From Macrostomum lignano (Eukaryota): a DNA stretch of 64,000 bases. This document shows, piece after piece, positions 1,239-54,038 of the stretch. Both the position numbers and the translations under genes were made by a program. Each line of letters opens with the position of its first letter. Position 1 is the stretch's first letter. The notes beneath the pieces are model-generated. The model was not told where the DNA came from, ran no database searches, and was given only the letters and a program-made list of their open reading frames with translations. The stretch covers positions 22,350 through 86,349 of the forward strand of contig NIVC01002831.1 in the NCBI GenBank assembly GCA_002269645.1, given 5' to 3'.

Positions 1239-1623
1239 CGTCTACAGCACTGACTATCGCATGGAGAAAGATTCCAGTGTTCTTTCTCCACTCTTCTAAA
1301 CTGCTGCACTAACAGACTCTTGAATCTTTTATCTTTACTTTTTGCCCCAGGCGATAACGAACTCCTGAAAAAGGTATATTAATGCTTCACCTGAGACACA
1401 CCATAGACAATCTATACGGCAACTTTGCATTTTCGTTTGCCAGAGAACTCCCGCTTCACTCCGTGACTATCACAGGTAATTAAACATATTTTAGGCGCTA
1501 CTTTTTGGTGCCTGCCTACGCTTAAAAACCGTTTATTTGTACCGAAAAATGACTCACCTGTTATGCAATACAACTTGCACTTTAGGAAGAACCGACAGCC
1601 GAAGCACAGCATCTCCAAGTACC

Positions 1624-1723
1624 ATGGCTTGGCGGGATCTTCGCGGCTGGCTGCTCGTATTGTTGTGGGCCACCGCATCTGTTGAAGCTGCCGATGTGGC
1701 CTCGCCCGATGGCTTTGCATTTG
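1624..1723 (+). CDS. Exon 1: signal peptide [22 protein letters not shown] plus short linker
   Basis: ATG in ACCATGG context, basic n-region, hydrophobic core, VEA-A cleavage-like motif, and donor G|GTAAG in phase 1 matching the downstream exons. Confidence 0.75.
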
Positions 1724-4700
1724 GTAAGCCTTCTGCCCCTCTTCTTCGAATCTCGGATGCCCTTGCTTGCCTCTGCTGTGAGTGTTTTGCCGATAAGTCT
1801 GCTTGAGTTGCTTTCGTCTTATGCTCGAGACAAATGTGACTGCATCATTTGTACCTGGGTCATTCTGAGTCATGTGTCAGCGTCATTCTTGTGTGGATCA
1901 ATCGTGTCTCGGTCATTCTATTGTGTCTGGATCCATCGTGTCTATTGTGTCTGGGTCAATCGTGTCTGGGTCAATCGTTTCTGGGTCAATCGTGTCTGGG
2001 TCAATCGTGTCTGGGGAAATCTTGTCTGGGTAATCGTGTCTGGGTTAATCTTGTCTAAGTGATTCGTGTCTGGGTCAATCGTGTCTGGGTCAATCGTGTC
2101 TGGGTCAATCGTGTCTGGATCCATCGTGTCTGGATCCATTGTGTCTGGGTCAATCGTGTCTGGATCCATCGTGTCTGGATCAGTCGGGTCTGGATCAGTC
2201 GGGTCTGGGTCAATCGTGTCTGGGTCAATCGTGTCAGGGTCAGTCGGGTCTGGGTCAATCGTGTCTGTATCAATCATGTCTGGATCAATATTGTCTGGAT
2301 CAACCGTACCTGGATCAATAGTGTCTGGATCAATCGTGTCTGGGTCAATCGTGTCTGAGTCAATCGTGTCTGGGTCAATCGTGTCTGGATCACTAGAATC
2401 AGGGACGCCAAAGCTATTGCGGGGCACCATATATTTTGCGCCCCTGGCCCCGCCGCAGCACGTGCGCCTGTTTAAGTTGCTTAAGTCATGGTTATTTGCC
2501 TTATTTTAGAGCCATTTGTGTCTGAACATTATTCAGGTCTCGATTATTCTCTCTGTCTGATTCGCGTTCATTCATTCGGTCATTAGCATCGAGCTTTCTC
2601 GCAAACGAGCCATAAATCTTGTTGAATTTTAAATTCGATCTTATCTGGCCGGGTCTGGCTTTCATATGGTGTCATTAAAAAAAATGGCGAAAGATTACTA
2701 AAGGACGAATGCAAGGTCAACGCACCTTTCATTTCTTATCGTCTACGTTGAACAGTGCAACAGCCTTATCAATTAGTTTTTATTATTTTCAGAGATCAAT
2801 TGCCGAACTGTGTTGACAAAATAAACAAAATCTAATAGAGAGACACGAGCGGAAACCTGTGACCTGCTAAGTTCCATTTTTACTGTGTGAGCCATGCGTC
2901 ATCAGTTCAGCTCCAGCGGTAACTATAGTTGTTGGCAACATAATTACGAGCCAACTATAGGCCTCTAATTAACCGTCTATAGATATATCGATAAATTCAA
3001 CTCGACGCAGTTCTACGAGGGTTGTCAGAAAAGTTCTGTGTATATTGTAATAACTTGAGAACGATAAACAGTATAGAAATATGAAAAGTTACAAATGTCT
3101 TCCTTAACATTTATTCACTCAAAGTATGAGCCCTCAGCTTCAATGCACTTCTCCCAACGCCGCACCAGCCCGTCAATGCCTGCAGTCATGCCATTGTTCG
3201 TCACGGCGGCAATGCCAGCCTTGTAGGCCCGATTCACGTCTTCCTCTGCGCTGAAGCGCTGGCCCCGCATCGACTCCTTGATGCGAAGGAAGAGGAAAAG
3301 GTCGCATGGACTTAAGTACGGGGAATAAGGCGGATGCGGAAGAATTTCCCACCCCCACGACTCGATCGTAGCCAGCACGCTTTGCTTTCGGTGCGGGGCT
3401 GCGTTGTCGTGAAGCAGAATCGGGCCAGCCGCGTGAAGTGCAGGCCTTTTGTCCCGAATGGCACGCCGAACTTTCACCAAAACCGACAGGTAGAAATCAC
3501 AATTGACCGTCTGCCCCACTGGCACAGGCTGATCGAACAACAGACCCTCCCGGTCAAAGAAAGTCACGTGCATGACCTTCAGCTGGCCGATGCTCCGGAT
3601 GGCCTTTTGAGGTCGCGGAGAACCTGGCCTGCACCATGTGGCACTCTGCCGCTTCAACTCCGCCTCCCAAGAATGCGCTCAGGTTTCGTCGCAGGCAACG
3701 ATCCTTTGCAGGAACGCCATGCCCTCCGCCGACACCGCTGCAGGTTGGATGCGCACATGGCGATCCGCCGAGCCCGCTGATCGTCAGTGAGCAGATGCGG
3801 CACCCACTTGGCACAGACCTTGCGCATCCCAAGGTCCTCGGTCAGGATCTTGTGGACTGAGTCGTGGGACACCCCTATGGCATCAGCCAGCTGCCTGGTG
3901 GTCAGTCTCCGGTCCTGCAGCACGGCTGCCTTCACCTGACTCACCAGGCTGTCAGTCCGAGCACTCGTTGGTCGTCCACTGCGTGGGTTGTCGTCGAGGT
4001 CTTTTTTTGCCGTTGCGAATGGCAATAGCCCAACGTCTCATAAGATGGGCAAAAGTCTCCTATATGGTCTGCCGCATTTCTTCAAGAATCTCGGTTGCTG
4101 AACGCCCCTGAAGGACATGAAATTTGATGATATCGATTGTCGCGCTTAGAAAAACTCTTTCGCGGGGGACGGAATGCGACATGGGTGTGGTTGAAAAACT
4201 ACTGCTACACAGGCTAGAAATGATCTATTGCTCTAAAACTGAAGCTAGCGACTCTTTATATATGTATATATCTATGGCTAAAACCCCAACTCTTTAGTTA
4301 TTCATAGAGCTGAGCTATTCTCGAATACACAGACAAACAGAACTTTGTACACAGAACATTTCTGACAACCCTCGTAATTTCACCAGAAATCTACCTGAAC
4401 TTTGAGATGAGAGACGGATTTTCTGAATAACTGATAAAATAGAGAATATTTTAATCTATTTAAGCTATCAGCCTATAGTATTTCCATTCATTTAAGATAG
4501 TTTCTAAATATTGATAGAAATGACGGGCAAAGAGTTAAGTACTTCAAGGTAGATGAACAGCAAGACTGAGAAAATCGATGAACTAAGGTGCTGATGCTTT
4601 CAAGTTTTACGTTGTGGCATCGAAATGAAATTCATCGCAGTATAGAGTGCTACAGGTATTGCATGACCAATAATGCATGAAAAAATTAGAATATATAGAA

Positions 4701-7700
4701 TGTGCTTATAAATTTAGTCTAACTAGCAAAAAATTTAAATTTGGAAAAGACGATCGGTTTCGTCGAGGGTCAAAGAATGAGTACGAGCGTATGGCCGATA
4801 CAGGTGGCGATTTCCCATACTGAAACTGCTGTAAAACTTCGAGCTTGCACTGAAACAATCGTTTGAAAATCGTAGAGGACGGCAAGACGCTGCTGTTCAC
4901 TATTCGGAGCAACATCGGCGAGGACCCGCAGAAGGCGTTCGTCACCCGGGGCAACGGCAACCGGCCAGCCCCGTCGCCCAATGAGCCGCTGCCGGCCGTC
5001 TACCGGTCCGACCTGCTCGACGAGCTGCCCGACACTGTCCGCCGTCTAGACAAAACCTACATGGTCGCCGAGATGCGCGTCGACAGGGCCGTCGTGATGC
5101 GCGTCGTCTTCGATGTCGGCGACTACCCGGACAGCCTAGACCAGTTCAACTGGTTCTCGCCGTCCCGCCTGATCGGCGCCTGGCCCTACCGCCTTGACGA
5201 CGTGGCCAAGTTTAGCGCCTTCTCCATCGAGGGTGACGCAAACAAGGAGCGCAGGTTCTTCATAGCAACGAGCTTCGACGGCTGCAATGGTGACCGCGGC
5301 TTCTGGCTCGTGTCCGGCGCCAGAGATCCCTGTGGCTGGGGCCACAACGGCTGGAAGGGCCTCGCACCGGCGCTGATCTACAATAGATTTAAGGACCGCA
5401 CGCTGCAACAGGGTGCCGCGTATGCCGACCAGTTTCTGGTGTACCTCACCGACACTGTGGACGAGTTTCGAGCCGAGTTCAGGAAGACCTTCTTCCACGG
5501 TGAGCACTTTACTGAAACTATTAACATTATCGAATAACTAAGGCAATTATAGTTGAAAGTCGCCCTGATCTGCTACAGCGGAAAGAAAACAGCTTCTGTA
5601 CACGATCAAGGCCAACATCCACAAGAGCGCGCTGGAAACGTTCAGGCAGCAACAAAACTATCGCGCGCCAATCGACGATAATTTGCCGATTATGTACCGG
5701 TCCGACCTGCTGGACGATCTGTCGTGGACCGTAAAAGACTCGGGCATGACCCAGATGGTGATGGAGCTCGTCAAGGACCACTCAGTGGTGGCTCAGTTGG
5801 TTTTCAATGTGACTAAGGATGTCGACAGTCTGACCTTAGACAACTGGTTCTCGCTAGAACGGCTGGAGTCCTCCTATCCCTACCTGGTGGACAAGACCAA
5901 GTTCAACTACTTCTCTTTGGATGGAGACGTGGGCGAGCAGCGGCGGTTTTACATCAGCTACAACTATGGAGGCTGTCATGTTGACGCCGGGTTCATCGCT
6001 ATCTCAGATGCCAGAGACAGTTGCAACTGGGCCAACCGCAACTGGCGCGGCTCCCCGCCGTTGCTGCTGTACAACCGGCTGCAGAACAAGCCGTTCCATG
6101 CTGGCGTCGACACGGCCGACCGGATGCTTGTGTACCTCACGCACGAGGTCGAGGACAGACGATGGAAGTTCAGGCAACCGTTCATTGTTGGTGCGTGCGA
6201 ACATTTTTGCAAAAGCATTGTGCAAGTATATTACTTTGGGCACTTATACTTAGGGTAGTTGAACGAAGCAGTAAAATAAGATATATTTATTTTAATGCCC
6301 TAATAATAATCACGAGTCAGAATCAAAGACCGGTGTTACAGTTTAGAGCCTCTGGGGCTCCGGCCAGTTTGGGTCGCCGATCCGGAGACTGCGAACAGGC
6401 TGGGATCTCCAACCGGAGACTTTACAGGGTGTAAGATCTCCTTCTGACAATATCGCCCCCTGTATCCTGCAGGAGGCGCTAAAGCTGCAAAACTTTGCTG
6501 ATTCTTTCTCTAAATTGCTTGTTGACTGTTATACCACAGGTTACATTCCCACAATCTGGAGAATGTCCAGAGTCGTGTTCATCCCGAAACCTGCTAAGGG
6601 TGACTACACCAACGTGAAATCCTTCCGGCCCATCAGCCTCACTTCCTTTTGTGTTAAGCTGATGGAGAGGCTCATCCTGTGGAGGCTTCGAGAGTGCGAC
6701 CTGCGCTCCGACCCTGTCAGTAAGTACCAGTACGCCTTCCAGCCTGGGAGGACGACTGAGCATGCTCTCCACGCCATTACCTCCAAAATTGAGAGTGCCA
6801 TCCTTAGCAAACAACTCGCTTGCGGGTTGTTCGTTGACTTCGAAGGAGCATTTGACAATGTCCTCTTCCGCTCCTTCAGAAATTCTCTTTCCCGCAGGAA
6901 TGTAAGACACAGCATTGTTCGCTGGATTTATTTTATGATCCGCAAAAGGTTTGTGACATCCACACTTATGGGCGTTACCCTCACCCGGGCGGTGATGAAA
7001 GGCGGCCCGCAAGGTGGCGTGCTAACTCCACTTCTCTGGAATCTCGTCATGGACGAACTTCTAACCGCTGACATTCCCAGCAGTATCACCAGGGCGGGCT
7101 ACGCCGATGACGTTGCCGCGGTCGTCAGCGGACCCGACCCCGCCACTCTGCGCAACCTGATGCAGCAATTCGCCGACAAGGCGGCCGACTGGGCTACACA
7201 GCATGGCCTAAAAATCAGCGTCACTAAGACTGTCGCTGTCGTTTTCACCAAGCGCCGTAAGGGGGAGATGAAAAACCTCACTGTCTATGGCAGAAACATC
7301 CCCTTCAAGAAGGAGGTCAAATACCTCGGTGTGACGCTAACGCATGACCTGCGCTGGACGAAGCACCTTGATAACGTCATCGGTCGGGCAAAACGCTGCT
7401 TTGCCCAGCTGCGCAGAGCCATCGGGCCGACTTGGGGCCTCTCGCCTAGAACGGTCCGTTGGATTTATACCGGCATCATCCGGCCCAGTATCACATACGC
7501 GAGTCTCATCTGGACTAGCGTGCTGGAGCAGAAGGCCGCCCGTCAGCGGCTGTACCAGCTTCAGGGCAGCATTTGCCGTGCCATCACAGGTGCGTACCCG
7601 TCCACCCCTTACGAGGGGCTGAACACTATCCTTAACCTACCTCCGCTTCACCTATTTATTAGGGCGGAGGCTATGAAGTCTGCCTCCCGGCTTATCAGAG

Positions 7701-10700
7701 ATAAAACGTTAAATAACGCGCCCTCTGGCTTTATGCCAATGAAAACATTAATCCCGCATATGGACTTTGTCCGCCGCGACCTTAACAACATCCACATGGA
7801 CCTGGGCAATGTGGATAGTCGACCTCCCGCCCTCAACATCAGGAGGGGCTTCAAGACCGCCATCCCTGGCCGAGACAACATTCCGCTGGATGTCGGTGTG
7901 AACCGGCGCAGCCAGGGCATTCACTGCTTCACCGACGGCTCGCTGTTCAACGGCCGCGCTGGAGCGGGTATTGCCATTTTCCACGAGGGTAAGATGCTTC
8001 TCCAGGAAAGTCTGCACCTCGGTGAGAACACCTCAGTTTTCCAAGCTGAAATTTGCGCCATTGAGCAGTGTGCCCAGCAACTGTTTCAGGCGAACATTAA
8101 TAATTTTGACATTAATTTCTACACTGATAGCCAAGCTGCTATTAAGGCCTTAACCACTGAGAATATCTCCGCTGCTACAGTATCTCAATGCCACCGCAGT
8201 GTGCAATCTCTCTCAGTCCTTAACAGGATTAGAATTATCTGGACACCTGGTCACAGCAACATCCTGGGCAACGAGCTCGCGGACTCTCTCGCCAAGGAGG
8301 GCAGCAACCCAGACGGCAACCACCGTCTGATGAGGCTACCCACCCCCAGGTCGCAAGTCACCCGCCATATCAACAGGTGGCTCCATCAGCAGCACCAGCT
8401 CCACTGGAACAGCTGCACCGAGTACAGGCAGAGCCGCTCTGCCATGCCTAACCTGAACAGGAAAGTCTCTGATTATCTGATTTCGCTTAACAGAACCGAC
8501 CTCAGGGAGATGTGCATGGTCCTAACCGGCCACGGATTCTTCCAGAGACATATATCGTTGCAAACCGGTTGCCCTCCCACCTGTCCCTTCTGTGGCATAG
8601 GAGAGGAGACCGCGGAGCATCACGTCACCTTCTGCCCTTACTTCAACAAGGCGCGGCACAAATACCTCGGCCACCCCCAGCGGATGGACGAGCTGACCAC
8701 CGCGGACAATATCCGAGACCTCCGCGCCTTCGTCCGGGACTCCGGCCGGATGAGGGTCGCCGATGCCTCCACTGCGGACCTGCCGACTACTGGCGGGGAC
8801 TGGGCGCACCCCCAAGGCTAATCCTTGTGCTCTTTTACCTTGGGGTTGCGATAGGGGCCTCGCGGCCTATTCGCGGCGCCTGCGCCCCCCGTCAGTAGTA
8901 AGTAAGTAAGTAAGATCTCCTTCGGAGACTACAAACGGTTATGGATCTCCGCGATAGGAGATGCGTAACCGTTGTGGGATCTCCAAGGCATGGTCAGGTC
9001 TCCCTATCCGGAGATCTTAAACCAGATTCCGTTGTCCCCTCGGAGATTCTGCACCGTTTGCCGATTTCCTTCACGAGTGCAAAAACTAGGGTTTGATTTA
9101 GGATCTCCAGTTACCGATCTCCCCCATAATTAATATGTCGAAAATTATAATCTCTAGCTTTTTATTGTGTATAGAAACCTTCCGTGAGGGCGATTGTAAA
9201 ATGGCGTAATTTTTCGTGTTGGGTCTCCGTGCAGGAGATCCTTAACTTCAGGGAACAGAAATCCTAACACCGGTTCACTTTGCCGCAAAAAGTTCCAAAG
9301 GTTAGATATCATTCAAATACTGAAGTAAGTTTAAAAAAGGATCTGAACCAGCTGTACATTGATTTAAGCCATCTTTGACGTGCAGAGCTATTAGTGGTAA
9401 TGTGAACCGGCCTTTAAGAAGCTAGAGGTTCATGTATTGAGAAAACGAACGCCAGAGTTATACAGCATCTTTGATTGTGTTAGCAACTTTTTGGCAAGAA
9501 ACATTTAATCTATTTCTATTGGCTTTCAGACGGAGACAAGCAAATCCTGTACACAATCACGCCCAACGTTGGGAAAGAAGCGGTGGACACATTCAAGCAT
9601 CAGCAGGACTACCCGATTCCATCCGATCGCTCCCTGCCCCCAATTTACCGGTCGGACCTGCTGGACCAGATGGATAAAACCGTGAGGCGTTCAGGTCGTA
9701 GCAAGATGGTTGCAGAGATGCGCAAAAACAACGCAGTAGTAGCGAGACTTGTATTTGACGTTGCAACTGACACGGATTCGCTTACCTTACTCAATTGGTT
9801 CTCAAGAGATAGACTCGTCGCAGCGTACCCTTATCAGATTTCCAAGAAAATTCATCTGAACTACTTTAGCGTGGATGGTGACACATCCTTAAAGCGAGGA
9901 TTCTCTGTAACGGACACGGGAAAGGGATGTGACAACGATTTAGGATTCTGGATTGTCACAGACAGGAAGGATCCTTGCAACTGGGGATCACAGGGCTGGA
10001 AGGGAGCCGCGCCAGTGCTGCTATACAACAGATTCCGAACGGCGCCATTTCGCACCGGGGTGGACTATGCGGACCGCTTCGTGGTCTACTTGACAAACCA
10101 CGTGGACGAACTGCGCCCAGAGTTCACAAAAGCGGTCCTGTTTGGTGAGACATTTTATTTGATCGAAAGAATTTATGGAAAAATTCTATTGGATGCTTAA
10201 CAATAGGAAATTCAATAACAAAAACTCAAGTAAAAAATTTTAGAAAAAGGCAAGCAGCTGCTTTACACCATTGTTCCGAACGTGCACTTGGAGGCTCTGA
10301 CAACATTCGAGCATCAACAAAACTACAAAATGCCTGCCGATGGGTCTCTGCCTCCGGTCTACAGATCCGATCTCATCGACGAGCTTCCTCGAGCTGTGAG
10401 GCAGTCGGGAATGACCAAGATGGTCGTCGAGATGCGCAAAGACAATAAAGTCGTCTCTCAAGTGGCATTCGATGTTTCCACCGACACAGAGAAGCTCGAC
10501 AAAGAGAACTGGTTCTCGCTGTTAAGACTGTACTCATCTTACCCTTATCCAATTAGTCGGAAAGAGTTCAACTACTTTTCTTTGGATGGGGATACTGGCC
10601 AGAAGCGAAGATTCTACATCAGCAACCACTATGGAGGTTGCGACCGAGATTCAGGCTTCATCATGGTGTCTGACTCGCGCGGCAACTGCGACTGGGTAAC

Positions 10701-13700
10701 TCGAGGCTGGCGAGGCTCTCCTCCGAGTCTGGCCTACAACCGAGAGCAGGGTCGATCGTTCCACGACAGCGTTGGGTACGCGGACAGACTAGTAATTTAC
10801 CTGACAAAAGAGGTACTGGATCCTCGAGCCGAGTTTAAGAAGCCGCTAATCATCGGTAGGATATACTCGTACCTTTTGGTCAATTTTTGTTCCTTCTTTG
10901 TTCTTTGTCCTACGTTTCTACAAAAGTTTTTGCCTTTTAGGACTTGTATTGCTCCAAAATGAAATTCTCTTCAGCAACTGCAGTAAAATGTGCTGGAAAC
11001 TATATTTTTTGCAACATAGTCTAGACGATTCTAGCCTTCCAACTACGAGCGTACCCAATTTAACGAATTTTTCCAATCGAAAATTTATCTTGTGAGAGTT
11101 TTAAATTTCCAAAAAACAGCAAACTAAGTAGAAGGAATAAGTCTTCTGTTAGTACTAAAGAAAATTCAATCCAGTATTTATTTCTTCGGTTAAAATTTGT
11201 AAAAGATAATATTGCCATCAGAATTCTCTAAGGGCAACAATGCATCTCATTGACGATTCGGTTTCGATAGACACTTGTTGGGACTCGAACGCCCAAGCTC
11301 CGAAGAAAAAACGTACAATTCACGTACAATCAGGATTTCTCTATCTAAACATCTGAATATCTGAATCGTACGAGTGAAGAAGCTACGTACATCCAGTAAA
11401 CCTGAGCAAGAGAAGTGTAGTTATTTGAATTCACCCGGTCTCCACGCTCTAGGACTGTGAATTTTTATAACATTGTGCCAAGCAACTACGCTCGTATTAG
11501 TCATTTACTCATTTTCTCATTTTCTCATTTTCTCATTTTCTCATTTACTCATTTCTCATTCTCATTTCATTCATTCTCATTCATTTCATTCATTCTCATT
11601 CTCATTCTCATTCTCATTTTCTCATTTCTCATTCTCATTTTCTCATTTACTCATTTTACGAATTTCACTTATTACCGATGAAAACAACCGGAAAAGTTAC
11701 AGTGATCGACCTAAAACTTCAAAAAACATTTAGTTTACACAATGGGTAAACTCCTCCAGTTTCTATTGGAAACCGAAAACCATATATTTGCAGTACAGTA
11801 AGGATCATTAAAAAACTAAAGCTTTTCGTTCACCGGAAAAATACACTACGGAGATAGGAAATTTCACGATTTTCAACACTAAAACAGTGATTGTGTCTCT
11901 TAGAAGTGTCAGAGAAAGTTATAATCACACTATTTCGTGTTTCACATGCTGCTCTAACGACGCATTAATAGAATTTTTATGTTAAATTGGTCTGTGACTT
12001 GAAAAAACGTTTAAAATAATGACAAGAAATAATAACAATTTCCTATCTCCGTGGTGCATTTTTCCGGTAAAACCTGCCTTTAAAACTATTTCGGAACGAA
12101 AAGCTTTATGCATATCGATAGAGCAATAAGAAAGGCACAACATATCAAAAGATGAACACTGGATCTGCCTAGTATTAAAAGGAAAAACAATTTTGGTGCT
12201 GAAAAAATTGAAACCTCCCATCTCTATAGTGTATTTTTCGGGGAAAAGTTGCCTTCAAAACATTTACCATAGATTTCGAGTGTAGCGTCCTATATATATA
12301 TGTTACTTGAGTAGGCTTTGATATTGTCTTGAGCAAGAGATAAATCTACAGTAACCTTAAATCTATATCATCTCAGTACGGGCAAATAAATAATCTGCAT
12401 CGGGTTCCACATCCTGAAATTGCACCTCGGTAATAAAAGAGTATCTTTTGATTGCAGATGGCAGCAAGCAGGTGCTGTTCACGATCAAATCCAATATCAA
12501 CACCGAGGCCAAGCACGCATACTCCTTCCAGCAGAACTACAAGGCTCCGACTGACGGGTCTCTGCCTCCTGTCTACAGATCTGACCTGCTCGATCAACTC
12601 GCCCTCACTGTGAAGCAATCAGGAAAGAAAAAGATTGTCGCTGAGATGGAAAAAGATGATCACGTGGTTGCTCGAATGGTGTTTGACTTGTCAGAGAAGA
12701 CCGACGAGATCACACTGATGAACTGGTTCTCGCGCTCTCGACTCGTCTCGTCCTATCCGTTCAAGATCGATCCGAAGCAAAGCACGAACTACTTTAGTAT
12801 TGACGGAGACGCTGGTCAAAACAGACGCTTTTTTGTTTCGTTCTCTGGTGGTGGATGTGACAATGATCGAGGCTTCTGGATGGTGTCCGACAAACGCGAT
12901 CCGTGCACTTGGGGCAACGAAGGCTGGAAGGGCTCGGCTCCAGTGCTGGTGTACAACAGATACCGAACTGCCACCTTTAGAAGCGGAGTGGACTATGCTG
13001 ATCGATTCACGATCTACCTGACGGACTCGGTGACGGAACTGCGAGAGGAGTTCAATCGGAAGGTCATGTTTGGTAAGTGTGTTATTGAAAGCAAAGTTAT
13101 TTGTTTTTTTTGTTGATTGCTTGTTTTTGTTGTTCGATAAGGTTTTGAAGTTCGGCAATCTTGAGGGTAACATGGGCGTTTCCTTGGAGAAACAGAACTG
13201 ATTCCTTGCGCTTAATGGTGCGGCAGCAGGCGGGGCGGTCGGCGTGCTCCAGGGTCACCTCCGGGTGGCACGAGGTGATGCAATGTGGGCTGCTTAAGGC
13301 AGTCTGCTTTGCAATGGTTCTGTTAAGGTCAGGGCACACTTTGTGGCAATCGGCGGATGGCGGCGCGGAATTTGTGGGTTCAGCCCCTGCAACAGGCCGG
13401 GTTCAGATCCTGGGTCGCAGAAGTTTTAGTTCAGGGCGCACCAGCGCAACGGCTGGCTATCGAACTGACCGGGTCCGGTGTCGCCGGACATCGCTCAAAC
13501 AAATCCACCCCTTGTACCTGGTGATTCCTCTGCAGGCTGTCGTGCGATTGCAAAACGAGTTGCAGTTTTGATCGGCGTATTTGAGCGGGATGGTCCCGTT
13601 GTGAATTCTGGCGTCGCAGGAGAGGCACAGGGCCTGGACCGATTGCAAAGCGGAGGCGGGGGTGCTGAGTCTCGGGGTGTCGGTCATCAGGATCAAAATT

Positions 13701-16700
13701 GTGATCGGCGCTTTACGTTTGTATCTGATCCCGTTGATAGCGTCGGACTCCGCTGCATTCAATTTTCACATGTCACAATTCCGCTGCATTGTAACAAGTA
13801 CTTCGCAAAGTGTGCTTTGGCGCTGTAGGAATAGGAGATCTCTTCTGAGATCTCTTCTGAGCGGTTGCAGTCATTGTTGTTAAACGGGGGGAAAGAGCTA
13901 GCTTCCCGCGGATCAGCCCTGGGGGGGGGGGCTCTGCCGCTGAGTGGCACTTCCAGGGGCCTAAGCCCGAGATACCTTCCTGATTGGGCCCCGACGTCTA
14001 GGCCAGGGGGAATTTTGGGGCTACTAACCCAAACCTATGGTACAAGACACCGCCAACCCAAAACGTGGAATTTCGGTGCTAGGACCGAGTTTACCCAGGC
14101 TACCCCCCAGCAGACAAGTCCTCGGGAGTGCGCGAAAAACAGAAGCAGTTGCAGTCATTAGGGCTTGGATTGCAAGCAGAGGCAAAAGAAGAAGCGTCAA
14201 AACTTGGGGCGTCGGACGAGCTGGAGCTCAGGGAAATAATCATGTAGTGTGTGCGCACCAGGAGAGGTGGTTGCCTGGTAGCAGGCATCGTAGTACGGCA
14301 GGCCCCCGACCATCCGAGTCGCCTCGGAGAGGTGATGCCTATGACCACAGCTACATCGTTGTTAATACCGTGGCTGTCCATACCTGTTGATACGATGGGC
14401 CGCTGCTGCTGCTGCTGCTGCTGTGTGAGTGTCGTCGGGAACGATTTCCCCCCTGTCAGAGCTACTCTAGGCCACGGACTACTTAAGTATACGCTAAGGG
14501 AAATTCAGCCTCCAAAAACATTTACACGAATCCTGCGTGTCGCGTCCTTTATAAACGACAATTAAATTGTCCCGGCTCTGGGCGGGCTGACCGAAGGAAA
14601 CTTAACACTACGTCCTCATCACTCAAGCTGCTCTTGCTGCTGTCATTGTTGTTGTTATTGACCACCCACTGGGTCTCCTGGTTGTTTGACCTTCCAATGC
14701 TAACTGGCTGCTTTGTGTGAGTTGTATCGGATTTTACCGTATTTAACTAATTTTCTACTATATTCGTATGTATAAGTTTGTGAGACGTTACGAATAAAAT
14801 GATCCGTGCATTTAAAACCATTAAATACTCGAATAAGACTAATTAAGGTCGACAAAACTTATTCACCAGAAATAAGCACTGTAAAAAATATTCCAACCTG
14901 CATCACTTTCCAATTTAGAAAACGACAAACAGCTGTTGTTCACCATTGTTCCGAACGTGCACTTGGAGACTCTGGAGACATTCGAGCATCAACAAAACTA
15001 CAAAATACCTGCCGATGGATCTCTGCCTCCGGTCTACAGATCCGATCTCATCGACGAGCTTCCTCGAGCTGTGAGGCAGTCGGGAATGACCAAGATGGTC
15101 GTCGAGATGCGCAAAGACGACAATCAAGTCGTCTCCCAAGTGGTGTTCGATGTTTCCACCGACACAGAGAAGCTCGACAAAGAGAACTGGTTCTCGGAGC
15201 TTAGACTTGAGTCGTCTTATCCGTACTCGGTCGATCGGAAAGAGTTTAACTACTTTTCTCTGGAAGGCGAGAGAAGCTCAAAGCGACGCTTCTACATCAA
15301 CAACTGGCACCACGGATGCCACCGAGAGACGGGCTTCATTGTTGTGTCGGACGCGCGCGGTCACTGCGACTACGTGACTCGAGGCTGGAGGGGATCTGCT
15401 CCGACCTTGATTTACAGTCGACTACCTGGAAAGCCGTTCGAAGAGAGCGCAGGATACGCTGACAGGCTACTGATTTACCTTGCAAAGGAAGTTCCGGACC
15501 TCAGGGCCGAGTTCAAGAAGCCACTCATGATCGGTACGTTATGCTGTTAAGTTTATTGATTGGGATCACAGGATTTACGAGTACTGCGTTTTATCTGTTG
15601 GCTGATTTCTTCACAGATTGGTATATAAAAGCTTTAAAAATCTCAAAGAGTTTGCTGAAGAAACAAAATTACGATTACTTGTTGACTGTTGGAACTTTTT
15701 TATAGCTTTTTGCAGCCCCATTTGAGCTGACACGGATAAGATTTAATCCAAGGAGTTATATAGAACTCTATGACATATTCTGTCAGGCAGCCTTGCTACC
15801 ACAGACAAAAGCTGCATTATTTTGGACAACATACGAGCATATCTTGGATTACAGTGCCCAAGAATTGGCTGAAAAAAGCTAACATTTTATGAAAAAGTGC
15901 CATTATATTAATGTTTAAAAAAGTCAATTGAAAACCCTGGGTTAACCATGACTTTATTCATAGAGACAAGGCCATGTGTTCGCGGATCGATACCGACGAA
16001 AAGCTCAAGAAAAAAGAATGCAGGGAGTTGGTATACCTCGCTAGGGCTGAGCGTACACGGTCACTAACTGACAAAGAGAGATAGGTTGATGCAAAACTGT
16101 ACACGCTGAGTAAGTCCACTGGCTAGTTTAAAAGTCGCCAGCCTACAAGGACAAGACAGCTACCTATATATGCAATAGTACCTCGTAGAATGCCCTAGAA
16201 AAAATTAATTTTTTATTCAACTCTATTGACGCAGATGGCAGCAAGCAGGTGCTGTTCACGATCAAATCCAACATCAACACCGAGGCCAAGCACGCATACT
16301 CTGTCCAGCAGAACTACAAGGCTCCGATTCGTGGTTGCTCGAATGGTTTTTGACTTGTCAGAGAAGACCGACGAGATCACACTGATGAACTGGTTCTCGC
16401 GCTCTCGACTCGTCTCGTCCTATCCGTTCAAGATCGATCCGAAGCAAAGCACGAACTACTTTAGTATTGACGGAGACGCTGGTCAAAACAGACGCTTTTT
16501 CGTTTCGTTCTCTGGTGGTGGATGTGACAATGATCGAGGCTTCTGGATGGTGTCCGACAAACGTGATCCGTGCACTTGGGGCAACGAAGGCTGGAAGGGC
16601 TCGGCTCCAGTGCTGGTGTACAACAGATACCGAACTGCCACCTTTAGAAGCGGAGTGGACTATGCTGATCGATTCACGATCTACCTGACGGACTCGGTGA

Positions 16701-18121
16701 CGGAACTGCGAGAGGAGTTCAAACGGAAGGTCATGTTTGGTAGGTTTGAAGTCAGAGTCTTCATATTATTATCTCATCTGATTATCAAATGAAAGCTGTT
16801 TACCATTTTAAACATCTTAGAAAAGAGCAAGCAGCTGCTTTACACCATTATTCCGAACGTGCACTTGGAGGCTCTGACAACATTCGAGCATCAACAAAAC
16901 TACAAAATGCCTGCCGATGGGTCTCTGCCTCCGGTCTACAGATCCGATCTCATCGACGAGCTTCCTCGAGCTGTGAGGCAGTCGGGAATGACCAAGATGG
17001 TCGTCGAGATGCGCAAAGACAATAAAGTCGTCTCTCAAGTGGCATTCGATGTTTCCACCGACACAGAGAAGCTCGACAAAGAGAACTGGTTCTCGCTGTT
17101 AAGACTGTACTCATCTTACCCTTATCCAATTAGTCGGAAAGAGTTCAACTACTTTTCTTTAGAAGGGGATGCTAGCCGAAAATTCTACATCAGCAACCAC
17201 TATGGAGGTTGCACCAGAGATTCAGGCTTCATCATGGTGTCTGACTCGCGCGGCAGCTGCGACTGGGTAACTCGAGGCTGGCGAGGCTCTCCTCCGAGTC
17301 TGGCCTACAACCGAGAGCAGGGTCGATCGTTCCACGAAAGCGTGGGCTACGCGGACAGATTGATCATTTATCTGTCAAACGAGTTCCTTGACCCACGTGC
17401 CGAATACAAAAGATTTATTATTTTCGGTGAGTCGTATTTGCTTTACATTAAACGGGTTTGCCGGACCCTTTAAAGCTACTACTGACGTAGTTCATTATTA
17501 AAGCCAATGAAAGTATTATTTCATGTAGCACTCTTTAATTTCCCTCTATTTACAGAAGAATACAAGCAGCTTCTGTTCACAATCAAGGCAAATGTCGGCC
17601 GAGAGGCGCTTAACGTGTTTTCGCATAGGCAGGACTTCAAAATGCCGACAGACGGTTCGCTGCCACCAGTGTACCGCTCCGATCTCTTGGACCAGCTGGC
17701 CTTGACTGTGAAGCAGTCGGGCAAGTCAAGGATGGTTGTTGAGATGCGCGAAGGCAAGAGCGTCGTGTCGCAGGTGATTTTCAACGTTGCCAAGGATACG
17801 GACAAGTTGACTCGCGAAAACTGGTTCTCGAAGGGGCGGATCGAGTCGTCGTACCCATTTTGGATCGGCCGGACTGAATTCAGCCAGTTTTCGCTGAATG
17901 GCGACTCATCCAGAAAGCGGCATTTCTCAATCAGCAGTACGGGCGGGGGCTGTGACACCGAGCGCAGCTTCTTTGTCGTTTCGGACAAGGAAGACTCCTG
18001 TCCCTGGATTAGCGAGGGCTTCAAGGGATCTCTGCCAGTTCTGGTTTACAACTACATCCAGGATGCTCCTAGCAGAGTGGGCAGCGGCTACGCTGATCGG
18101 CTGGTAATCTACCTTATGTAG
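1624..18121 (+). CDS. Multi-exon gene for a secreted protein with nine tandem ~205-aa uncharacterised domains (1654 aa if the broken exon 8 is skipped)
   Basis: Exons 1624-1723, 4876-5499, 5579-6190, 9530-10144, 10244-10855, 12458-13072, 14919-15533, 16235-16739 (broken), 16821-17426, 17556-18121. All have GT/AG boundaries and every intron is phase 1. Without exon 8 the joined length is 4965 nt, i.e. 1655 codons including the stop. Shared motifs: [19 protein letters not shown], FSxxG, GC, CxW, YADR. Extra small exons between 1724 and 4875 cannot be excluded. Confidence 0.85.
1890..2395. repeat. 15-bp minisatellite (GTGTCTGGGTCAATC and variants) in intron 1
   Basis: Period-15 tandem repeat visible directly. 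Confidence 0.95.
3016..4374 (-). mobile_element. Full-length but decayed mariner (DD34D) transposon
   Basis: ~27-bp TIRs CGAGGGTTGTCAGAAAAGTTCTGTGTA (3016-3042 and 4348-4374, one mismatch) with TA on both sides. Transposase motifs RSGRP, WVPHLL, HDNA and YSPYLSPCD are present. The ORF is split by frameshifts and a TGA in DET*AHSWE. The CGAGGG terminus resembles Hsmar2/irritans-type TIRs. Confidence 0.95.
4876..5499 (+). CDS. Exon 2: repeat domain 1 (subtype A)
   Basis: TAG|AG GAC GGC AAG ... TTC CAC G|GTGAG; 624 nt, open. Confidence 0.9.
5579..6190 (+). CDS. Exon 3: repeat domain 2 (subtype B)
   Basis: CAG|CG GAA AGA AAA CAG CTT ... ATT GTT G|GTGCGT; 612 nt, open. Confidence 0.9.
6445..8909 (+). 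mobile_element. 5'-truncated non-LTR retrotransposon, RT + RNase H + CCHC (I-group; Loa/R1-like)
   Basis: Open frame ~6446-8821 with QGGVLTP, YADD, RNase H (TDGS...AE...TDS...WTPGH...GNELAD) and C-terminal CPFC...H...C. It has a (TAAG)n tail and a 14-bp TSD GTAAGATCTCCTTC at 6431-6444 and 8910-8923. The endonuclease domain is absent. Confidence 0.95.
9530..10144 (+). CDS. Exon 4: repeat domain 3 (subtype A)
   Basis: TTTCAG|AC GGA GAC AAG CAA ... CTG TTT G|GTGAG; 615 nt, open. Confidence 0.9.
10244..10855 (+). CDS. Exon 5: repeat domain 4 (subtype B)
   Basis: TTTTAG|AA AAA GGC AAG CAG ... ATC ATC G|GTAGG; 612 nt, open. Confidence 0.9.
11505..11656. repeat. Degenerate (TTCTCA/TTTTCTCA)n simple repeat
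   Basis: Low-complexity tract visible directly. Confidence 0.9.
12458..13072 (+). CDS. Exon 6: repeat domain 5 (subtype A)
   Basis: TTGCAG|AT GGC AGC AAG CAG ... ATG TTT G|GTAAG; 615 nt, open. Confidence 0.9.
13140..14700 (-). mobile_element. GC-rich intronic insertion, possibly a decayed zinc-finger-bearing 5' part of a retroelement
   Basis: Composition contrasts with the AT-rich introns. Minus-strand fragments are Cys/His-rich ([26 protein letters not shown]). No RT motif, TIR or TSD was found. Confidence 0.3.
14919..15533 (+). CDS. Exon 7: repeat domain 6 (subtype B)
   Basis: TTTAG|AA AAC GAC AAA CAG ... ATG ATC G|GTACGT; 615 nt, open. Confidence 0.9.
16235..16739 (+). pseudogene. Exon 8: repeat domain 7 (subtype A), near-identical to exon 6 but with a net 110-nt frameshifting deletion
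   Basis: The segment equivalent to 12551-12662 (112 nt) is replaced by TT at 16328-16329. Length is 505 nt, and read from the canonical acceptor there is a TGA at 16351-16353. Splice sites are intact. Confidence 0.85.
16821..17426 (+). CDS. Exon 9: repeat domain 8 (subtype B)
   Basis: CTTAG|AA AAG AGC AAG CAG ... ATT TTC G|GTGAG; 606 nt, open. Confidence 0.9.
17556..18121 (+). CDS. Exon 10: terminal repeat domain 9 (A-like), ending in the stop codon
   Basis: TTACAG|AA GAA TAC AAG CAG ... TAC CTT ATG TAG. No transmembrane segment or GPI-type tail is visible. Confidence 0.9.
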
Positions 18122-20041: not shown

Positions 20042-21787
20042 CTATTTTAAAGACATACAAGTAACATAGCCTGACATTAAATTTGCGCTCTTTTGCGTGG
20101 TAAACAAATTTTGCCTCTTGATAGACCAGCAGTTAGTTTGTATTTTTGACGCCAATGCTTTTATGTCGAAAAAGCTTCTGGTATGCTCAACAGCCTTCCC
20201 CAAGTCTTCGTAGCCAACGAATTCACCCTTTGCTCTACTCCAACATAACTCCTTTCGCAGCTTTATCGCATCAATCACGATTACCTAATTTTTGTTCCAT
20301 ATTGATTGATTACATAGCTCCTTTATCTTTGAAACTGCCGTAGAGGACACACCAGGATCCCCGTCAACAGCGAGCTTCCATCTTCTGATGGTAGACACAG
20401 CCGGTAACTTTATAACTCGTCTGATTACAGAATACGCCTTTGGAGAACAGAAGTGCACCTGTGCGGAAAAGATGCCAATGTCCGCCAAAAATCTGCCACT
20501 CTTCCCTCTGCTCGAGTTTAGCATCATTCTTCGTCCTTCTTTCGTTAAAAAACATCTTCAGGTTTTTGCTCATATTTTCTGATTCATTTTCCAGCCGCTT
20601 AACTCTTTTCACGGTTGCATTTAGAATTTTGGTTAGCCGCTTTGAGCGCATCTTATAGTGCTGCAAATTCCTTCTAAATGCGTCAGGTACCCTTCTTTTC
20701 TTACTTTGTCTCCATTTTTTTATTTTAGGCCGCAAATTCTTCTTTGTTGAATTTGGATTTTGCATGAAAGCTGGTGAGTGCGGTGTAACTTGAGATGGGA
20801 TTGAAGCTGGCGATGGTTGCGGTGACACTTGGGGTGGGATTGAAGCTGGCGATGGTCGCGGTGACACTTGGGGTGGGATTGAAGCTGGCGATGGTTGCGG
20901 TGACACTTGGGGTGGGATTGAAGCTGGCGATGGTCGCGGTGACACTTGGGGTGGGATTGAAGCTGGCGATGGTCGCGGTGACACTTGGGGTGGGATTGAA
21001 GCTGGCGATGGTTGCGGTGACACTTGGGGTGGGATTGAAGCTGGCGATGGTTGCGGTGACACTTGGGGTGGGATTGAAGCTGGCGATGGTCGCGGTGACA
21101 CTTGGGGTGGGATTGAAGCTGGCGATGGTTGCGGTGACACTTGGGGTGGGATTGAAGCTGGCGATGGTTGCGGTGACACTTGGGGTGGGATTGACGCTGG
21201 CGATGGTTGCGGTGACACTTGGGGTGGGATTGAAGCTGGCGATGGTTGCGGTGACACTTGGGGTGGGATTGAAGCTGGCGATGGTTGCGGTGACACTTGG
21301 GGTGGGATTGACGCTGGCGATGGTTGCGGTGACACTTGGGGTGGGATTGAAGCTGGCGATGGTTGCGGTGACACTTGGGGTGGGATTGAAGCTGGCGATG
21401 GTTGCGGTGACACTTGGGGTGGGATTGACGCTGGCGATGGTTGCGGTGACACTTGGGGTGGGATTGAAGCTGGCGATGGTTGCAGTGACACTTGGGGCAG
21501 GATTGAAGCTGGAAGCTGCAGCGTAGCTGGGTATTGCATTGGTATTGCGCCAGGGTTAAGTTTTTTTTCCATTGGCGAAAGACCCTTGAGATAACAGCGA
21601 GTATGAGTCTGGAGAAAAATGTTTGTCCATTCATCCATGAGCTACTTATATGAACTCCTTGTCTGGGGCGTATAAACGGGTCCACTTTTAACCATAGACT
21701 GTGGACTGTGGGCAAGTGAGGAATATATAATATAGTTTTTGCGTTATAATTAAGAAAAGCCGTGTTCAGATTTCCAATTCTTTTCAC
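20042..21787 (-). mobile_element. Decayed THAP-domain / P-element-like (THAP9-type) transposase
   Basis: In order along the minus strand: THAP C-terminal AVP-like box (KLNPGAIP), basic coiled coil, HFCSPKAYSVIRRVIKLPAVSTIRRW, and MIDAIKLRKELCWS...FVGYEDLG. These resemble THAP9/P transposase blocks and are split across frames. Element ends were not found. Confidence 0.7.
20790..21512. repeat. 39-bp minisatellite, ~18 copies, in frame within the THAP transposase linker (PPQVSPQPSPASI)n
   Basis: Period-39 tandem repeat with few variant sites. Confidence 0.95.
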
Positions 21788-28592: not shown

Positions 28593-31500
28593 CTACACAA
28601 TGACCCATTCCTCTTCGACGCTTTCTTCTGGTTCTTGTTCTCTTTCGTCAGCCTCTTCGTCTTGCCACAACCCTTCTTGTCTACGCGGCTCAATGTAGCG
28701 TTTCATCTTCTCTACATTTACAATCTTTACTTTCTGATGTTCATCAATCGACTTCACTTCATAGGTCAGGCTGGTCAACTTCCGGGTGACACGGAAAGGT
28801 CCAGTCCATGGAGCGTGGTGTTTGACAGACCAGCGAGGTTCACGCTGCCGTAGGACAGATGGTGGGATAAAAATCCAGACCAATGATCCAACCTTGAACC
28901 CTTTTTTCTTGGACTTTCTATCATAATATCTCTTCTGGCGGCGCTGTGCTAAATCAACAGACTCTCTCACAGCTTCAAATGCTTTCAGTAGAGACTCTTT
29001 CGTGGAGCTGGCGAAAGTTACAGCAGTGCTGGCCGGCTCAGCCAGTCGATATACAATATCAAGAGGAAGCGTAACTTCTCGCCCAGTCATCAGGAAATGA
29101 GGCGTAAAGCCGGTGCTGCTGTGGACGGTGCTTCGATAGGCCAGAAGGCAATGAGGAATAACATCTTGCCAGTCTTCGGGTTCCACCGTTTGCAGGTAGC
29201 ATCGTAGCACGCTGTGCAATGTTCTATGGAATCTTTCTACAAGACCGTCACACTGAGGATGAAAATAGGTAGTGCGAGTTTTTTGAATGTCAAATATTTT
29301 GCAGAGACTCTTGATGACTTTGCCGTCCACGTTGCTACCCCGATCGGAGTGAATGATATGCGGTGCTCCCCATCTCGATATCCACACGTCGAATATTGCC
29401 TTCGCAACGGTGTTCGCTCGTTCGTCAGGAATTGGTATTAATTCGGCCCACTTAGTGAAGTAGTCGACTATCGTAAGCAATCGATTATTGCCTTGCCTCG
29501 AGGTAGCCACTTTTACTATGTCGATTCCAATGCGATGCATAGGAAATCCTGTAGCTATCGGCTGCAGAGGGCCTCGAGTGATTGATGTTGGCCTAGATCT
29601 TTGACACGGAATGCATGACCTGACAAATAGTTCAACATCCAGGGCTAATTTTGGCCAGTAGGCACGCTTCTTGACAGATGTTCTTGTCTTTTCGACACTA
29701 AAGTGACCTAACTCATGAATTTCTTTAATGAAGCTTTCTCGTTTACACTGCGGCAGTACTAGAACAGGCTTAGTCTTGAATAAATAATGCATTACACCGT
29801 TAATGAAGCACAATTCGTCGGCTTTGGACATAAGGCTCAAACTTTCTGGTGACATTCTATCTCGTTCTCCAGTTTCAAACGCTGTTTTTCCATTGGCTAG
29901 CTTCCGAAATACTGGTCCAATTCCTGGATCCTGTAACTGCAGTGCACGCATACTCGGCTCCTCTTCAGTCTCACTCTGCTCAGCTTCGTCTATTAACTCA
30001 CTTTCGTCCTCGCTTTCGGATTTCCTTGGAACCAGCGTTTGTTTCCTTCTAGACAAAACAGCTGCGACAGTCTGATCTTCGTCAGTTTGACATTCTGCAT
30101 CTGAAATTGCTTTGCTAGGTCGACAAGATTCGCACGGTCTTGTACACCTGCGTGATAAAGCGTCTGCGTTGGAATGCAGTTTACCTGGCCGGTAGAGTAT
30201 CTCGAAGTTAAACTCCTGAAGAGATTCGATCCATCGAGCTAATTGGCCATTAGGTTCTTTGAACTGTAGTAAGTAGGTCAACGCCTGGTGATCTACCCTG
30301 ATTGTAAACTTCTTTGGCGCTAGATATGACCTAAACTTTTTAACAAACTCGACTACTGCTAGTAGTTCTCGGCGAGTCACGCAGTAATTCTTTTCGGCGG
30401 TGCTGAGCACTCGACTTCCATAGGCAATCACTTTTTCTTCGCCATTCTGTTGCTGTGATAAAACGCATCCTATGGCAAAGTCGCTAGCATCAGTATCTAG
30501 AACAAATTCGGAGTCTTCGCCTGTCATTATTGGCAATGCTAAGATAGGTGCCGATGTTAAGGCGGACTTAAGGCGAATGAAACTTTGCTCTGCCTCGTCG
30601 GTCCAGGTAAATTTCTTATCAGTTGTCAGCACTCTTAAGGGCTCGGAAATCTTTGAATAGTCTTTAATGAATCGTCTGTAATATGATGACAGGCCTAGAA
30701 AACTTCTAACATCTTTCTGATTCGTTGGTGTTGGCCATCTCTTAATAGAATCAATCTTCTCATCGTCTACTGCTATTCCTTGAGGCGTTATCACATGACC
30801 TAAGATCTTAAGCGACTTGGCAGCAAAATTGCACTTACTAGGTTTAAGGCGAAGATTTGCTGCTCTTAATCGTTCAAAAACTTGTTTGAGTCTCTCGTTG
30901 TGAATATCTAACGTTTTACCCATAACAATAACATCATCGATGTAAGCTAAGCATGCTTCCCAATTTAAGCCTTGAAGGACCATCTGAATGAGTCTTTGAA
31001 AAGTTGATGGTGCATTGCGTAAGCCAAAGGGCATAACATTAAATTCAAAGAGTCCATGGTGACAGACAAATGCGGTTTTCTCGCGATCTTTTTCTTCCAT
31101 TTCTACTTGCCAGTAGCCTGCTTGCAAGTCTAATGCAGAAAAGTAAACGTTATTTGCTAAAGCATCTAGCATGTCGTCGATTCTTGGCACAGGGAATGCA
31201 TCAGGTTTAGTTGCAGCATTCAGTTTTCTGAAATCAATGCAAAAACGAGAGCTTCCGTCCTTCTTTTTCACCAGAATGACAGGTGCAGCCCACGGTGATG
31301 TTGACGGCTGAATGACTTTATCATCAAGCATTTGTTGAATCAACTTCTGCTCCTTGATGGTTGGCAGTGCTGCTCTCCTTAATGTCTCTCTGACAGGCAT
31401 TGCTGTGCCAGTATTTATCGAGTGTTTCAGTAAAGCAGTTCGACCAAGCTTGCCATCTCTTGAAAATATGTCGCTGTACTCATCTAGGATGTCACTAACA

Positions 31501-49938: not shown

Positions 49939-50101
49939 CTATGGCGACATTGTGCCGTCCACCATTATCGGCAAAATAGTTGGCGGTGTCTGCTCTTTAT
50001 CCGGCGTCCTTGTTATCGCCCTGCCCGTGCCAGTCATTGTGTCGAATTTTTCCCGCATCTACCATCAGAATCAGCGGGCAGACAAGCGTAAGGCGCAAAA
50101 G
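49939..50101 (+). CDS. Shal: Shal exon 2 (GYGD filter, S6)
   Basis: TTGCAG|C TAT GGC GAC ... [54 protein letters not shown]|GTACGT. Confidence 0.97.
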
Positions 50102-52163: not shown

Positions 52164-52432
52164 GTGAGAATTTTTCCATTGATTATAATGATAGCTACAT
52201 TTGCTGTAATGCTTAGTTTAGATATACACTTCCACTACTATTATTAGTATATTATTTAACTATTTTTGATAGATTATTAATTTTCGTAGACTTTTTAGTT
52301 GACTGGCGCAACAAGTTTTTGTCTAGTAATTTCGAGATAAAATAATTGAACTATTTAGCATTCGAACGTTAAAACCTTTTCTTGTTGTTTGCATTTACCT
52401 GAGTGACGTTTAAAATGAGTAGCAATATGCTT

Positions 52433-53643: not shown

Positions 53644-54038
53644 TATATTCGAACTATTATTATGCATAATTATTATTGCATTATTACTCTTACGCAGCTT
53701 CACCGGTTCCGGGTGAGAAGTGATGCGATATTCTCATTTTTCTGCAAATTTTCGTATTCAAACCCCAAGTTCTGTAATCTGTTGTCTTTCTTAACTGTTC
53801 GAGTCATTCTCTTTATTCTTTATTCTACGCTATTTCCATGCATAAGTGAGCACTTCATTTTTTTCCGAACTCGTTTTCTTTAATTAACTAAGTACTATTA
53901 CTAATATACTGATAAGGTTCTACTAACCATGTGTAGCATTAGGCCTTAAGTAACTATTAAATAACGTGCGTAACTAACTTATATTTATTATTGTGTTCAA
54001 AGTTTCCCATTGTTGCTGTCAATCTCTTTCCATTGCAG

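Follow-up and report, generated by a model that had tools for sequence, protein, structure and literature searches.

A tandem array of exon-encoded NWFS modules in a secreted protein of Macrostomum lignano

The flatworm Macrostomum lignano has a real gene for a secreted multi-module protein that lacks a membrane anchor and consists of tandem copies of a single module, eight intact and one broken. We analysed this gene in a 64,000-nucleotide stretch of genomic DNA (the window; GenBank assembly GCA_002269645.1, contig NIVC01002831.1, positions 22,350 to 86,349 of the forward strand, numbered here from its first letter). The module is a beta-rich unit of ~190 amino acids with one disulfide, and consecutive modules are separated by linkers of ~15 amino acids. 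We refer to it as the NWFS module, after an invariant motif. The sequences are already public as unnamed proteins; the module is undescribed, and the architecture, an exon-duplicated modular secreted protein, is a familiar one.

Using one copy as tblastn query, we found nine module copies on the plus strand within 4869-18115 and none elsewhere in the 64 kb. The E values of these matches were 1e-63 to 1e-153, and the amino acid identities 46-100%. The first coding exon (coding part 1624-1723) has its ATG at 1624 in a good context and encodes a signal peptide, then ADV, up to a phase-1 donor (G/gtaagc). All nine coding introns have a GT donor and an AG acceptor and split a codon after its first base, and are thus in phase 1, as an earlier reading of the DNA from its letters only (the sequence-only reading) had stated. 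Having one module per exon, each flanked by phase-1 introns, the gene falls into the phase 1-1 exon-shuffled class. The intact internal exons measure 624, 612, 615, 612, 615, 615 and 606 nucleotides; since all are multiples of three in phase 1, each can be skipped in frame. The sequence-only reading had extended this property to any subset of internal exons, which is correct for these seven but not for d7, a frameshifted exon of 505 nucleotides. Likewise, the nine homologous single-domain exons that it placed after a signal-peptide exon were all recovered by tblastn and junction reading, but only eight are intact. The extent that it gave to the gene, 1624-18121, runs correctly from ATG to stop; the gene nevertheless begins upstream, for the models P0002 and P0158 start with HTIDNLYGNFAFSFARELPLHSVTITG, which is window 1397-1475 joined to 1586 onward. 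The protein ends at the same point as single-module homologues, and therefore has no membrane anchor; together with the signal peptide, this agrees with the secreted, anchorless protein proposed before. The exons and the repeats within the introns are listed in the table.

Table. Exons of the NWFS module gene and repetitive elements within its introns (window positions; nt, nucleotides; aa, amino acids; UTR, untranslated region; ORF, open reading frame).
Feature	Position	Strand	Remarks
5'UTR exon	at least 1397..1475	+	5' end undefined; joined to 1586 over a 110-nt gt-ag intron (models P0002, P0158)
Start-codon and signal-peptide exon	1586..1723	+	sequence reading, spliced translation; N-terminus same in P0155-P0158
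Module exon d1	4876..5499	+	624 nt, phase 1-1; tblastn E 2.6e-64; splice sites; 100% identity to P0158
Module exon d2	5579..6190	+	612 nt, phase 1-1; preceded by a 79-nt intron; 99.5% identity to P0158
Module exon d3	9530..10144	+	615 nt, phase 1-1; tblastn, splice sites; 100% identity to P0158
Module exon d4	10244..10855	+	612 nt, phase 1-1; ~93% nt identity to d8, exon only
Module exon d5	12458..13072	+	615 nt, phase 1-1; 98.4% nt identity to d7; copy used for AlphaFold model
Module exon d6	14919..15533	+	615 nt, phase 1-1; ~80% nt identity to d4 and d8
Module exon d7, broken	16235..16739	+	505 nt; 110-bp internal deletion relative to d5
Module exon d8	16821..17426	+	606 nt, phase 1-1; tblastn, spliced translation
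Terminal module exon d9	17556..18121	+	TAG stop; no inter-module linker; 97-98% identity to P0001/P0151 C-terminus
15-nt tandem array, ~30 copies	1947..2392		first coding intron; Tandem Repeats Finder
Mariner-like transposase remnant	3115..4025	-	first coding intron; Pfam Transposase_1, DDE_3, HTH_32 on two adjacent ORFs
Non-LTR (long terminal repeat) retrotransposon ORF, 768 aa	6515..8821	+	d2-d3 intron, gene-sense; Pfam RVT_1 9.6e-31, RNase_H 6.6e-13

The exon order could be compared with public gene models, as near-identical matches of the profile search described below were assigned to M. lignano by exact look-up. P0158 (UniProt A0A1I8JEJ3) joins the 5'UTR exon, the signal peptide, d1, d2 and d3, its modules being 100, 99.5 and 100% identical to those of the window; the same arrangement recurs, with slight differences, in P0002 and P0155-P0157. 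In P0182, d5 (99.4%) and d6 (95.6%) are joined to a d7-type module that is intact. A more divergent copy is represented by P0001, P0151 and P0152, in which the A-type modules are 86-88% identical to d5; P0151 has more alternating modules, and both it and P0001 finish with d8-type and d9 modules. The junctions backed by models are thus signal peptide-d1, d1-d2, d2-d3, d5-d6, d6-d7, d7-d8 and d8-d9. Neighbouring modules were joined in genomic order, and exon skipping was seen in none of the available UniProt models. The species also shows an expansion of the family, with secreted paralogues of one, two or multiple modules.

Relative to d5, exon d7 has a clean 110-bp deletion in which the LPPVYRSDL region is lost, and the resulting frameshift leads to an early stop. 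The nine exons therefore yield eight intact modules, and a full frame requires skipping of d7: with d7 omitted, the spliced translation is an open frame of 1654 amino acids. As d5 and d7 show 7 differences over ~500 aligned bases, the deletion must be very recent.

Identity to d5 is 47-59% among the intact copies, and 43 positions, those of NWFS, FSxxG, GC-x15-C and AD among them, are invariant across all eight. The core motifs listed by the sequence-only reading were for the most part correct. NWFS, FSxxG and GC-x15-C are indeed invariant; its PxYRSDL is really LPxxYRSDL, the form kept across the intact copies, and three others show deviations (for CxW, d6 has CDY; for GW[KR]G, d2 has NWRG and d9 has GFKG; for YADR, d1 has YADQ and d2 has TADR). 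That the domain belongs to no named family was borne out. Pfam gave no match for five window copies at E<=1 or for two at E<=10, NCBIfam gave none for d5, and a sequence search of the PDB returned zero matches at E<=10 with either one copy or the 63-sequence profile A2. A word-indexed homologue search found nothing with d5 alone and only 7 proteins with the family alignment.

A profile of the eight window copies was far more productive. Searched with hmmsearch against a library of 1.84 billion sequences, it matched 590 representative proteins (clusters at 50% identity) at E<=1e-3 and 98 at E<=1e-10, and the significant matches to proteins of other phyla extend over most of the ~190-residue module. 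We defined the family by the profiles A1 and A2, the latter being the 63-sequence alignment. By look-up, its members come from corals (Acropora, Desmophyllum), bivalve and gastropod molluscs (Mytilus, Solemya, Pomacea, Batillaria), the crinoid Anneissia, the hemichordate Ptychodera, amphioxus (Branchiostoma) and Macrostomum; one bacterial member, P0022, is from Myxococcota. The sequence-only reading had likened the domain to an unannotated extracellular module of marine invertebrates, and the members from Acropora, Mytilus, Solemya, Pomacea, Anneissia, Ptychodera and Branchiostoma agree with this. In A2, F75 and C149 are invariant, and W89, F90, F112, G116, R122, F124, C133, D136 and A180 are conserved at >=90%. 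The family signature consists of NWF, FSxxG, R-x-F, GC-x(13-16)-C with an Asp three residues after the first Cys, and a terminal AD, and is present in all eight intact copies. Conserved positions are mostly hydrophobic or structural, together with one Cys pair and Arg/Asp, and include no catalytic-looking set. Partner domains in the long proteins are EGF, Sushi, C-type lectin, TSP1, fn3, ZP and TIG, with PAN also named as a partner, and these place the module in an extracellular context. Almost every member is annotated as 'uncharacterized' or bears a spurious name that was assigned automatically. We considered DUF7922 as an identity and rejected it: the match was weak and additive in one four-repeat Branchiostoma protein and was absent on a single repeat and on other members. 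Exact look-up returned no record for a neighbouring ORF or for the Mytilus protein P0105. Literature searches by motif, by Macrostomum lignano with fibrinogen, by GGGWT/intelectin and by paralogue gene identifiers found nothing on this gene or module.

More distant members connect the module to a known group of proteins. In 14 of the retrieved proteins it is directly preceded by a fibrinogen-type A-subdomain, VYCDMTTDGGGWTMVFK. In scored members this subdomain matched XEEL, intelectin-1, fibrinogen beta and tenascin in the PDB over ~55 residues only (XEEL being the best sequence match for P0116), and GGGWT_bact in NCBIfam. Pfam matches of family members (Fibrinogen_C at positions 2-62, COLFI at positions 23-97) cover the A-subdomain only and not the module; in coral members, a match to COLFI positions 20-101 exceeds the Pfam cut-off. 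When members with the A-subdomain were aligned by hhalign with the fibrinogen-related profile, the probability was 98.2% over 52 columns, with nothing beyond. In the window modules, the sequence starts only with the strand after GGGW, and the invariant Lys3 aligns with the Trp of this motif. A tblastn search with three A-subdomain queries found no such subdomain anywhere in the window, and many metazoan family members likewise lack it. The flatworm copies have thus lost the A-subdomain, a lineage-specific loss that is no ground for excluding them from the family.

P0022, P0093, P0116, P0123, P0130 and P0131 combine a GGGWT_bact domain with the module; a bacterial source is confirmed only for P0022 (Myxococcota). 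Such proteins, alongside animal members, raise the question of module transfer between bacteria and animals.

To obtain a structural view of the module, we modelled d5 with AlphaFold2 from the 63-sequence alignment. The model was confident (predicted local distance difference test, pLDDT, 93.3; predicted template-modelling score, pTM, 0.89) and consists mostly of beta-strands with a few short helices, the last ~15 residues forming a low-confidence linker. An earlier AlphaFold model from only the eight paralogous copies had reached a pLDDT of 64, and its Foldseek result was uninformative. Foldseek comparison of the good model with 350,542 PDB chains, a check that the sequence-only reading had proposed, gave nothing below E 0.065 and thus no significant match to a characterised domain. 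More than half of the top 50 PDB matches were fibrinogen-like (alphaEC, Angptl3, ficolins, tenascin-C, fibrinogen beta/gamma), and none of these 50 was an intelectin entry. The best matches to fibrinogen-related domains (FReDs) had E 0.065-1, probability <=0.41, TM scores of 0.30-0.35, below the TM>0.5 expected of a common fold, and root-mean-square deviations of 8-11 A. Against viral predicted structures no significant match was obtained, and the background TM was 0.10-0.20. We also composed a FReD profile (A3), which a PDB search validated at E ~1e-100; hhalign of A2 with A3 gave a probability of 0.2% over 8 columns. As regards the Ca2+ and ligand site that FReDs have beside the P-subdomain disulfide, the two-Cys loop after FS-x-[DE]-G-[DE] bears a superficial resemblance to FSTxDxDxD...C...C; no alignment backs their equivalence.

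Is the module then no more than a diverged FReD, akin to those of ficolins or FREPs (fibrinogen-related proteins)? One paralogue, P0004, is automatically named 'Fibrinogen C-terminal domain-containing protein' in UniProt, and fibrinogen-like domains head the Foldseek list. However, Fibrinogen_C matches no scored window copy even at E<=10, the family profile is hardly related to the validated FReD profile, the similarity ends 52 columns in even where an A-subdomain is present, the superpositions are poor, and the window copies have no A-subdomain at all. We have therefore rejected the identity with an ordinary FReD (Fibrinogen_C), which we regard as barely credible. The distant fibrinogen-like relationship suspected by the sequence-only reading accordingly holds for the A-subdomain of distant members and for the head of the Foldseek list but not for the module itself, which on the structural model may bear a remote likeness to the FReD core. 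In our reading, the module is a separate, undescribed body on an A-subdomain shared with FReDs, intelectins and collagen C-propeptides.

The array shows recent homogenisation and copy-number change in its 3' half. Nucleotide identity between them is 52-62%, with the exceptions of d5/d7 (98.4%), d4/d8 (93.2%), d4/d6 (80.7%) and d6/d8 (78.1%). The similarity of d5 to d7 and of d4 to d8 is limited to the exons and ends within ~4 nucleotides of the acceptor and donor sites, and the introns flanking these near-identical exons are unalignable. Between the window and other M. lignano variants, the three 5' modules are almost identical, whereas the modules of the 3' half diverge by 4-14% and are not equal in number. 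Such a pattern suggests that unequal crossing-over or gene conversion has acted on the 3' half, within the limits of the exons. The recombination among copies that had been suggested before is supported by the exon-limited near-identities and by the differing copy numbers in paralogous models. The dN/dS ratio between copies is 0.19-0.29, which implies purifying selection on them, and conservation is higher in the strands than in the loops or helices. In the Mytilus galloprovincialis homologue P0184 (OZ263149.1, L001 6001-20232), the module is spread over at least three exons across ~5 kb, after a separate N-terminal exon. Since the module is split there, the layout of one exon per module is not ancestral. 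The first exon of P0184 is also present as an inverted duplicate ~5.5 kb upstream (520-371).

What might such a protein do? The odds seem to us slightly in favour of a secreted, soluble 'beads-on-a-string' protein in which eight functional modules act as a multivalent extracellular binder, by analogy probably a lectin-like one. We infer this from the partner domains found elsewhere, from the link to the A-subdomain group and from the absence of a catalytic residue set. The adhesion or mucus role put forward by the sequence-only reading is likewise a matter of inference. Ficolins, tachylectin-5 and intelectins are glycan-binding lectins of the GGGW A-subdomain group. The signal peptide would be cleaved and the eight functional modules exported as a soluble chain, which would bind in a multivalent manner outside the cell, most likely to glycans or other repetitive surfaces, and the tandem arrangement would provide avidity. 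The array would have grown by tandem exon duplication, and unequal crossing-over or gene conversion between exons would maintain its partial uniformity. Normally, all exons would be spliced in order, d7 being either skipped or truncating the product of this haplotype. Members of the ancestral type, in other phyla and in bacteria, carry the module after a YCDM..GGGW A-subdomain of the fibrinogen/collagen-propeptide type, which the flatworm copies have lost.

Several observations weigh against the multivalent binder. Binding is argued by analogy only; there is no detectable profile similarity to the ligand-binding part of FReDs or to any solved lectin, and the flatworm copies are missing the very part, the A-subdomain, by which the family is connected to lectins. 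The UniProt models are automatic gene models rather than transcript evidence, and are imperfect guides to splicing; P0151 and P0001 read through the homologue of the d5-d6 intron, and no model covers the d3-d4 and d4-d5 junctions. Finally, the frameshift in d7 means that the product of this particular haplotype may be truncated.

A serious rival, unlikely as we judge it, is that the protein is a structural component of a secretion, that is, part of a bulk matrix such as mucus, rhabdite, eggshell, cement or seminal material in which the repeats serve length and cross-linking, not specific recognition. A long chain of tandem modules with a signal peptide and no anchor would suit such a role, as would the expansion of single-, double- and multi-module secreted paralogues in M. 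lignano and the occurrence of the module in ZP-, EGF- and TSP1-containing matrix-type proteins of other phyla. Each module, however, has one disulfide, with no free cysteines, low-complexity or cross-linking motifs, and compact folded modules with well conserved surface motifs fit binding better than filler. The d7 lesion raises the question of decay: the haplotype or paralogue might be turning into a pseudogene, its product truncated after six modules and its transcripts degraded. The frameshifting 110-bp deletion itself, the origin of the models with an intact d7-type module from other copies, and the several transposon insertions in the introns speak for this. Yet the eight other module exons, the signal peptide and every splice site are intact, the deletion is very recent, d8 and d9 remain open and conserved 3' of the lesion, and a product of six modules could still work; we therefore hold decay to be rather improbable.

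The sequence-only reading had regarded the gene as a cassette system whose valency and composition could vary by splicing and recombination. In such a system, phase-1 exons would be combinatorially skipped, and recombined between copies, to give many isoforms; the result would be a diversified recognition repertoire, in a loose sense comparable to those of FREPs in snails or Dscam in arthropods. Every intact internal exon is symmetric (phase 1-1) and a multiple of three, preservation of the frame in this haplotype demands skipping of d7, and the exon-limited homogenisation and differing module numbers in paralogous models show active recombination. But phase 1-1 symmetry is ordinary for exon-shuffled extracellular modules, such as tandem EGF, Sushi and Ig (Patthy's rule), and is not diagnostic; moreover, all available models join adjacent modules in order, the dN/dS of 0.2-0.3 indicates conservation rather than diversification, and the three 5' modules are 98-100% identical between variants. 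Combinatorial splicing, possible in principle, finds no support here, and we consider both the cassette system and its likeness to FREPs and Dscam quite doubtful. A bolder view would combine several of these threads: the NWFS module would be an unrecognised lectin-type fold and, next to FReDs, intelectins and collagen C-propeptides, a further branch of the GGGW A-subdomain group, ranging from bacteria to chordates. In Macrostomum it would have been multiplied into an exon array, the 3' half of which would be reshuffled by exon skipping and by gene conversion limited to exons, so that individuals would have different multivalent recognition proteins. We put this forward as speculation with little likelihood.

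Among the closest known systems are the FReDs (PF00147: ficolins, tachylectin-5, angiopoietins, tenascins and snail FREPs). Both domain types are extracellular and have one Cys-Cys loop in the C-terminal half; distant NWFS members share the A-subdomain (C...YCDM..GGGWT), the first strand of the module matches the 'GWTVIQRR' strand, and FReDs are the best, though non-significant, structural neighbours (TM ~0.33). By contrast, the B and P subdomains have no counterpart in the module body by profile comparison, no A-subdomain is present in the flatworm copies, and a FReD is usually single and C-terminal, whereas the NWFS module here forms a tandem array of eight or nine. Intelectins or X-type lectins (XEEL, human intelectin-1) and the COLFI collagen C-propeptides follow the same logic of an A-subdomain with a family-specific body, but that of the NWFS module has no sequence or fold match to theirs, and the window protein lacks the A-subdomain. 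The NCBIfam model NF040941 (GGGWT_bact, for fibrinogen-like YCDxxxxGGGW domain-containing proteins) describes a 46-residue domain located directly upstream of the module in some family members; it spans the A-subdomain only and leaves the window copies unmatched. In gene structure, the array resembles exon-shuffled proteins with EGF, Sushi or Ig arrays, which have the same one module per exon, phase-1 introns and growth by tandem exon duplication. It differs from them in its undescribed type of module, and the layout of one exon per module is not conserved, the module of the Mytilus homologue being divided among at least three exons. Dscam arrays and snail FREPs likewise have tandem homologous exons and recombination between copies; in Dscam-type genes one exon is chosen per cluster, whereas here the gene models join the exons in series and no diversifying selection is seen.

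The NWFS family is large, being represented in no fewer than six animal phyla and in at least one bacterium, and has no Pfam or NCBIfam model, solved structure or tested function. Its attachment to the A-subdomain ties the module to a group that includes innate-immune lectins, and a confident model lacking a PDB counterpart recommends it for structure determination and for ligand screens. RNA interference, in situ hybridisation and transgenesis are available in M. lignano, and the eight-module gene is thus a practical entry to the role of the module. The exon-limited homogenisation is also a neat case of concerted evolution within a single gene.

The window contains further repeats and genes. 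Just upstream of the gene lies a 21-nucleotide tandem array of ~19 copies (843-1238). A second array, at 20779-21512, consists of 19 copies of 39 nucleotides with 97% identity; a third, at 52369-53716 (~1.3 kb, unit ~57 nucleotides), was recognised only from ORF translations with a periodicity of 19 amino acids. Since these two arrays are open in several frames, the long 'ORFs' within them are repeat artefacts. On the minus strand, 28593-33571 is occupied by an LTR retroelement of the Ty3/gypsy type. Its gag frame (with a CCHC zinc knuckle) and its pol frame (protease, reverse transcriptase, RNase H, integrase) are long and open, and from its sequence it looks recently active. The neighbouring genes, all on the plus strand, encode uracil-DNA glycosylase (57267-58393), a Lip_C lipase-like ORF (59190-60392) and an acidic serine-rich, nucleolin-like protein with an RNA recognition motif (RRM; 61111-63095). 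At 42403-43512 (+) we found exon 1 of a potassium channel gene of the Shal (Kv4) type, with a Shal-type N-terminus, BTB_2 and Ion_trans. About 6.4 kb downstream of this exon, at 49933-50047 (+), lies a full-length match to the Rfam family K_chan_RES (68 bits; gathering score 51). This RNA editing signal has been described for other Kv channels, and the match may mark a putative editing hairpin in the flatworm Shal gene.

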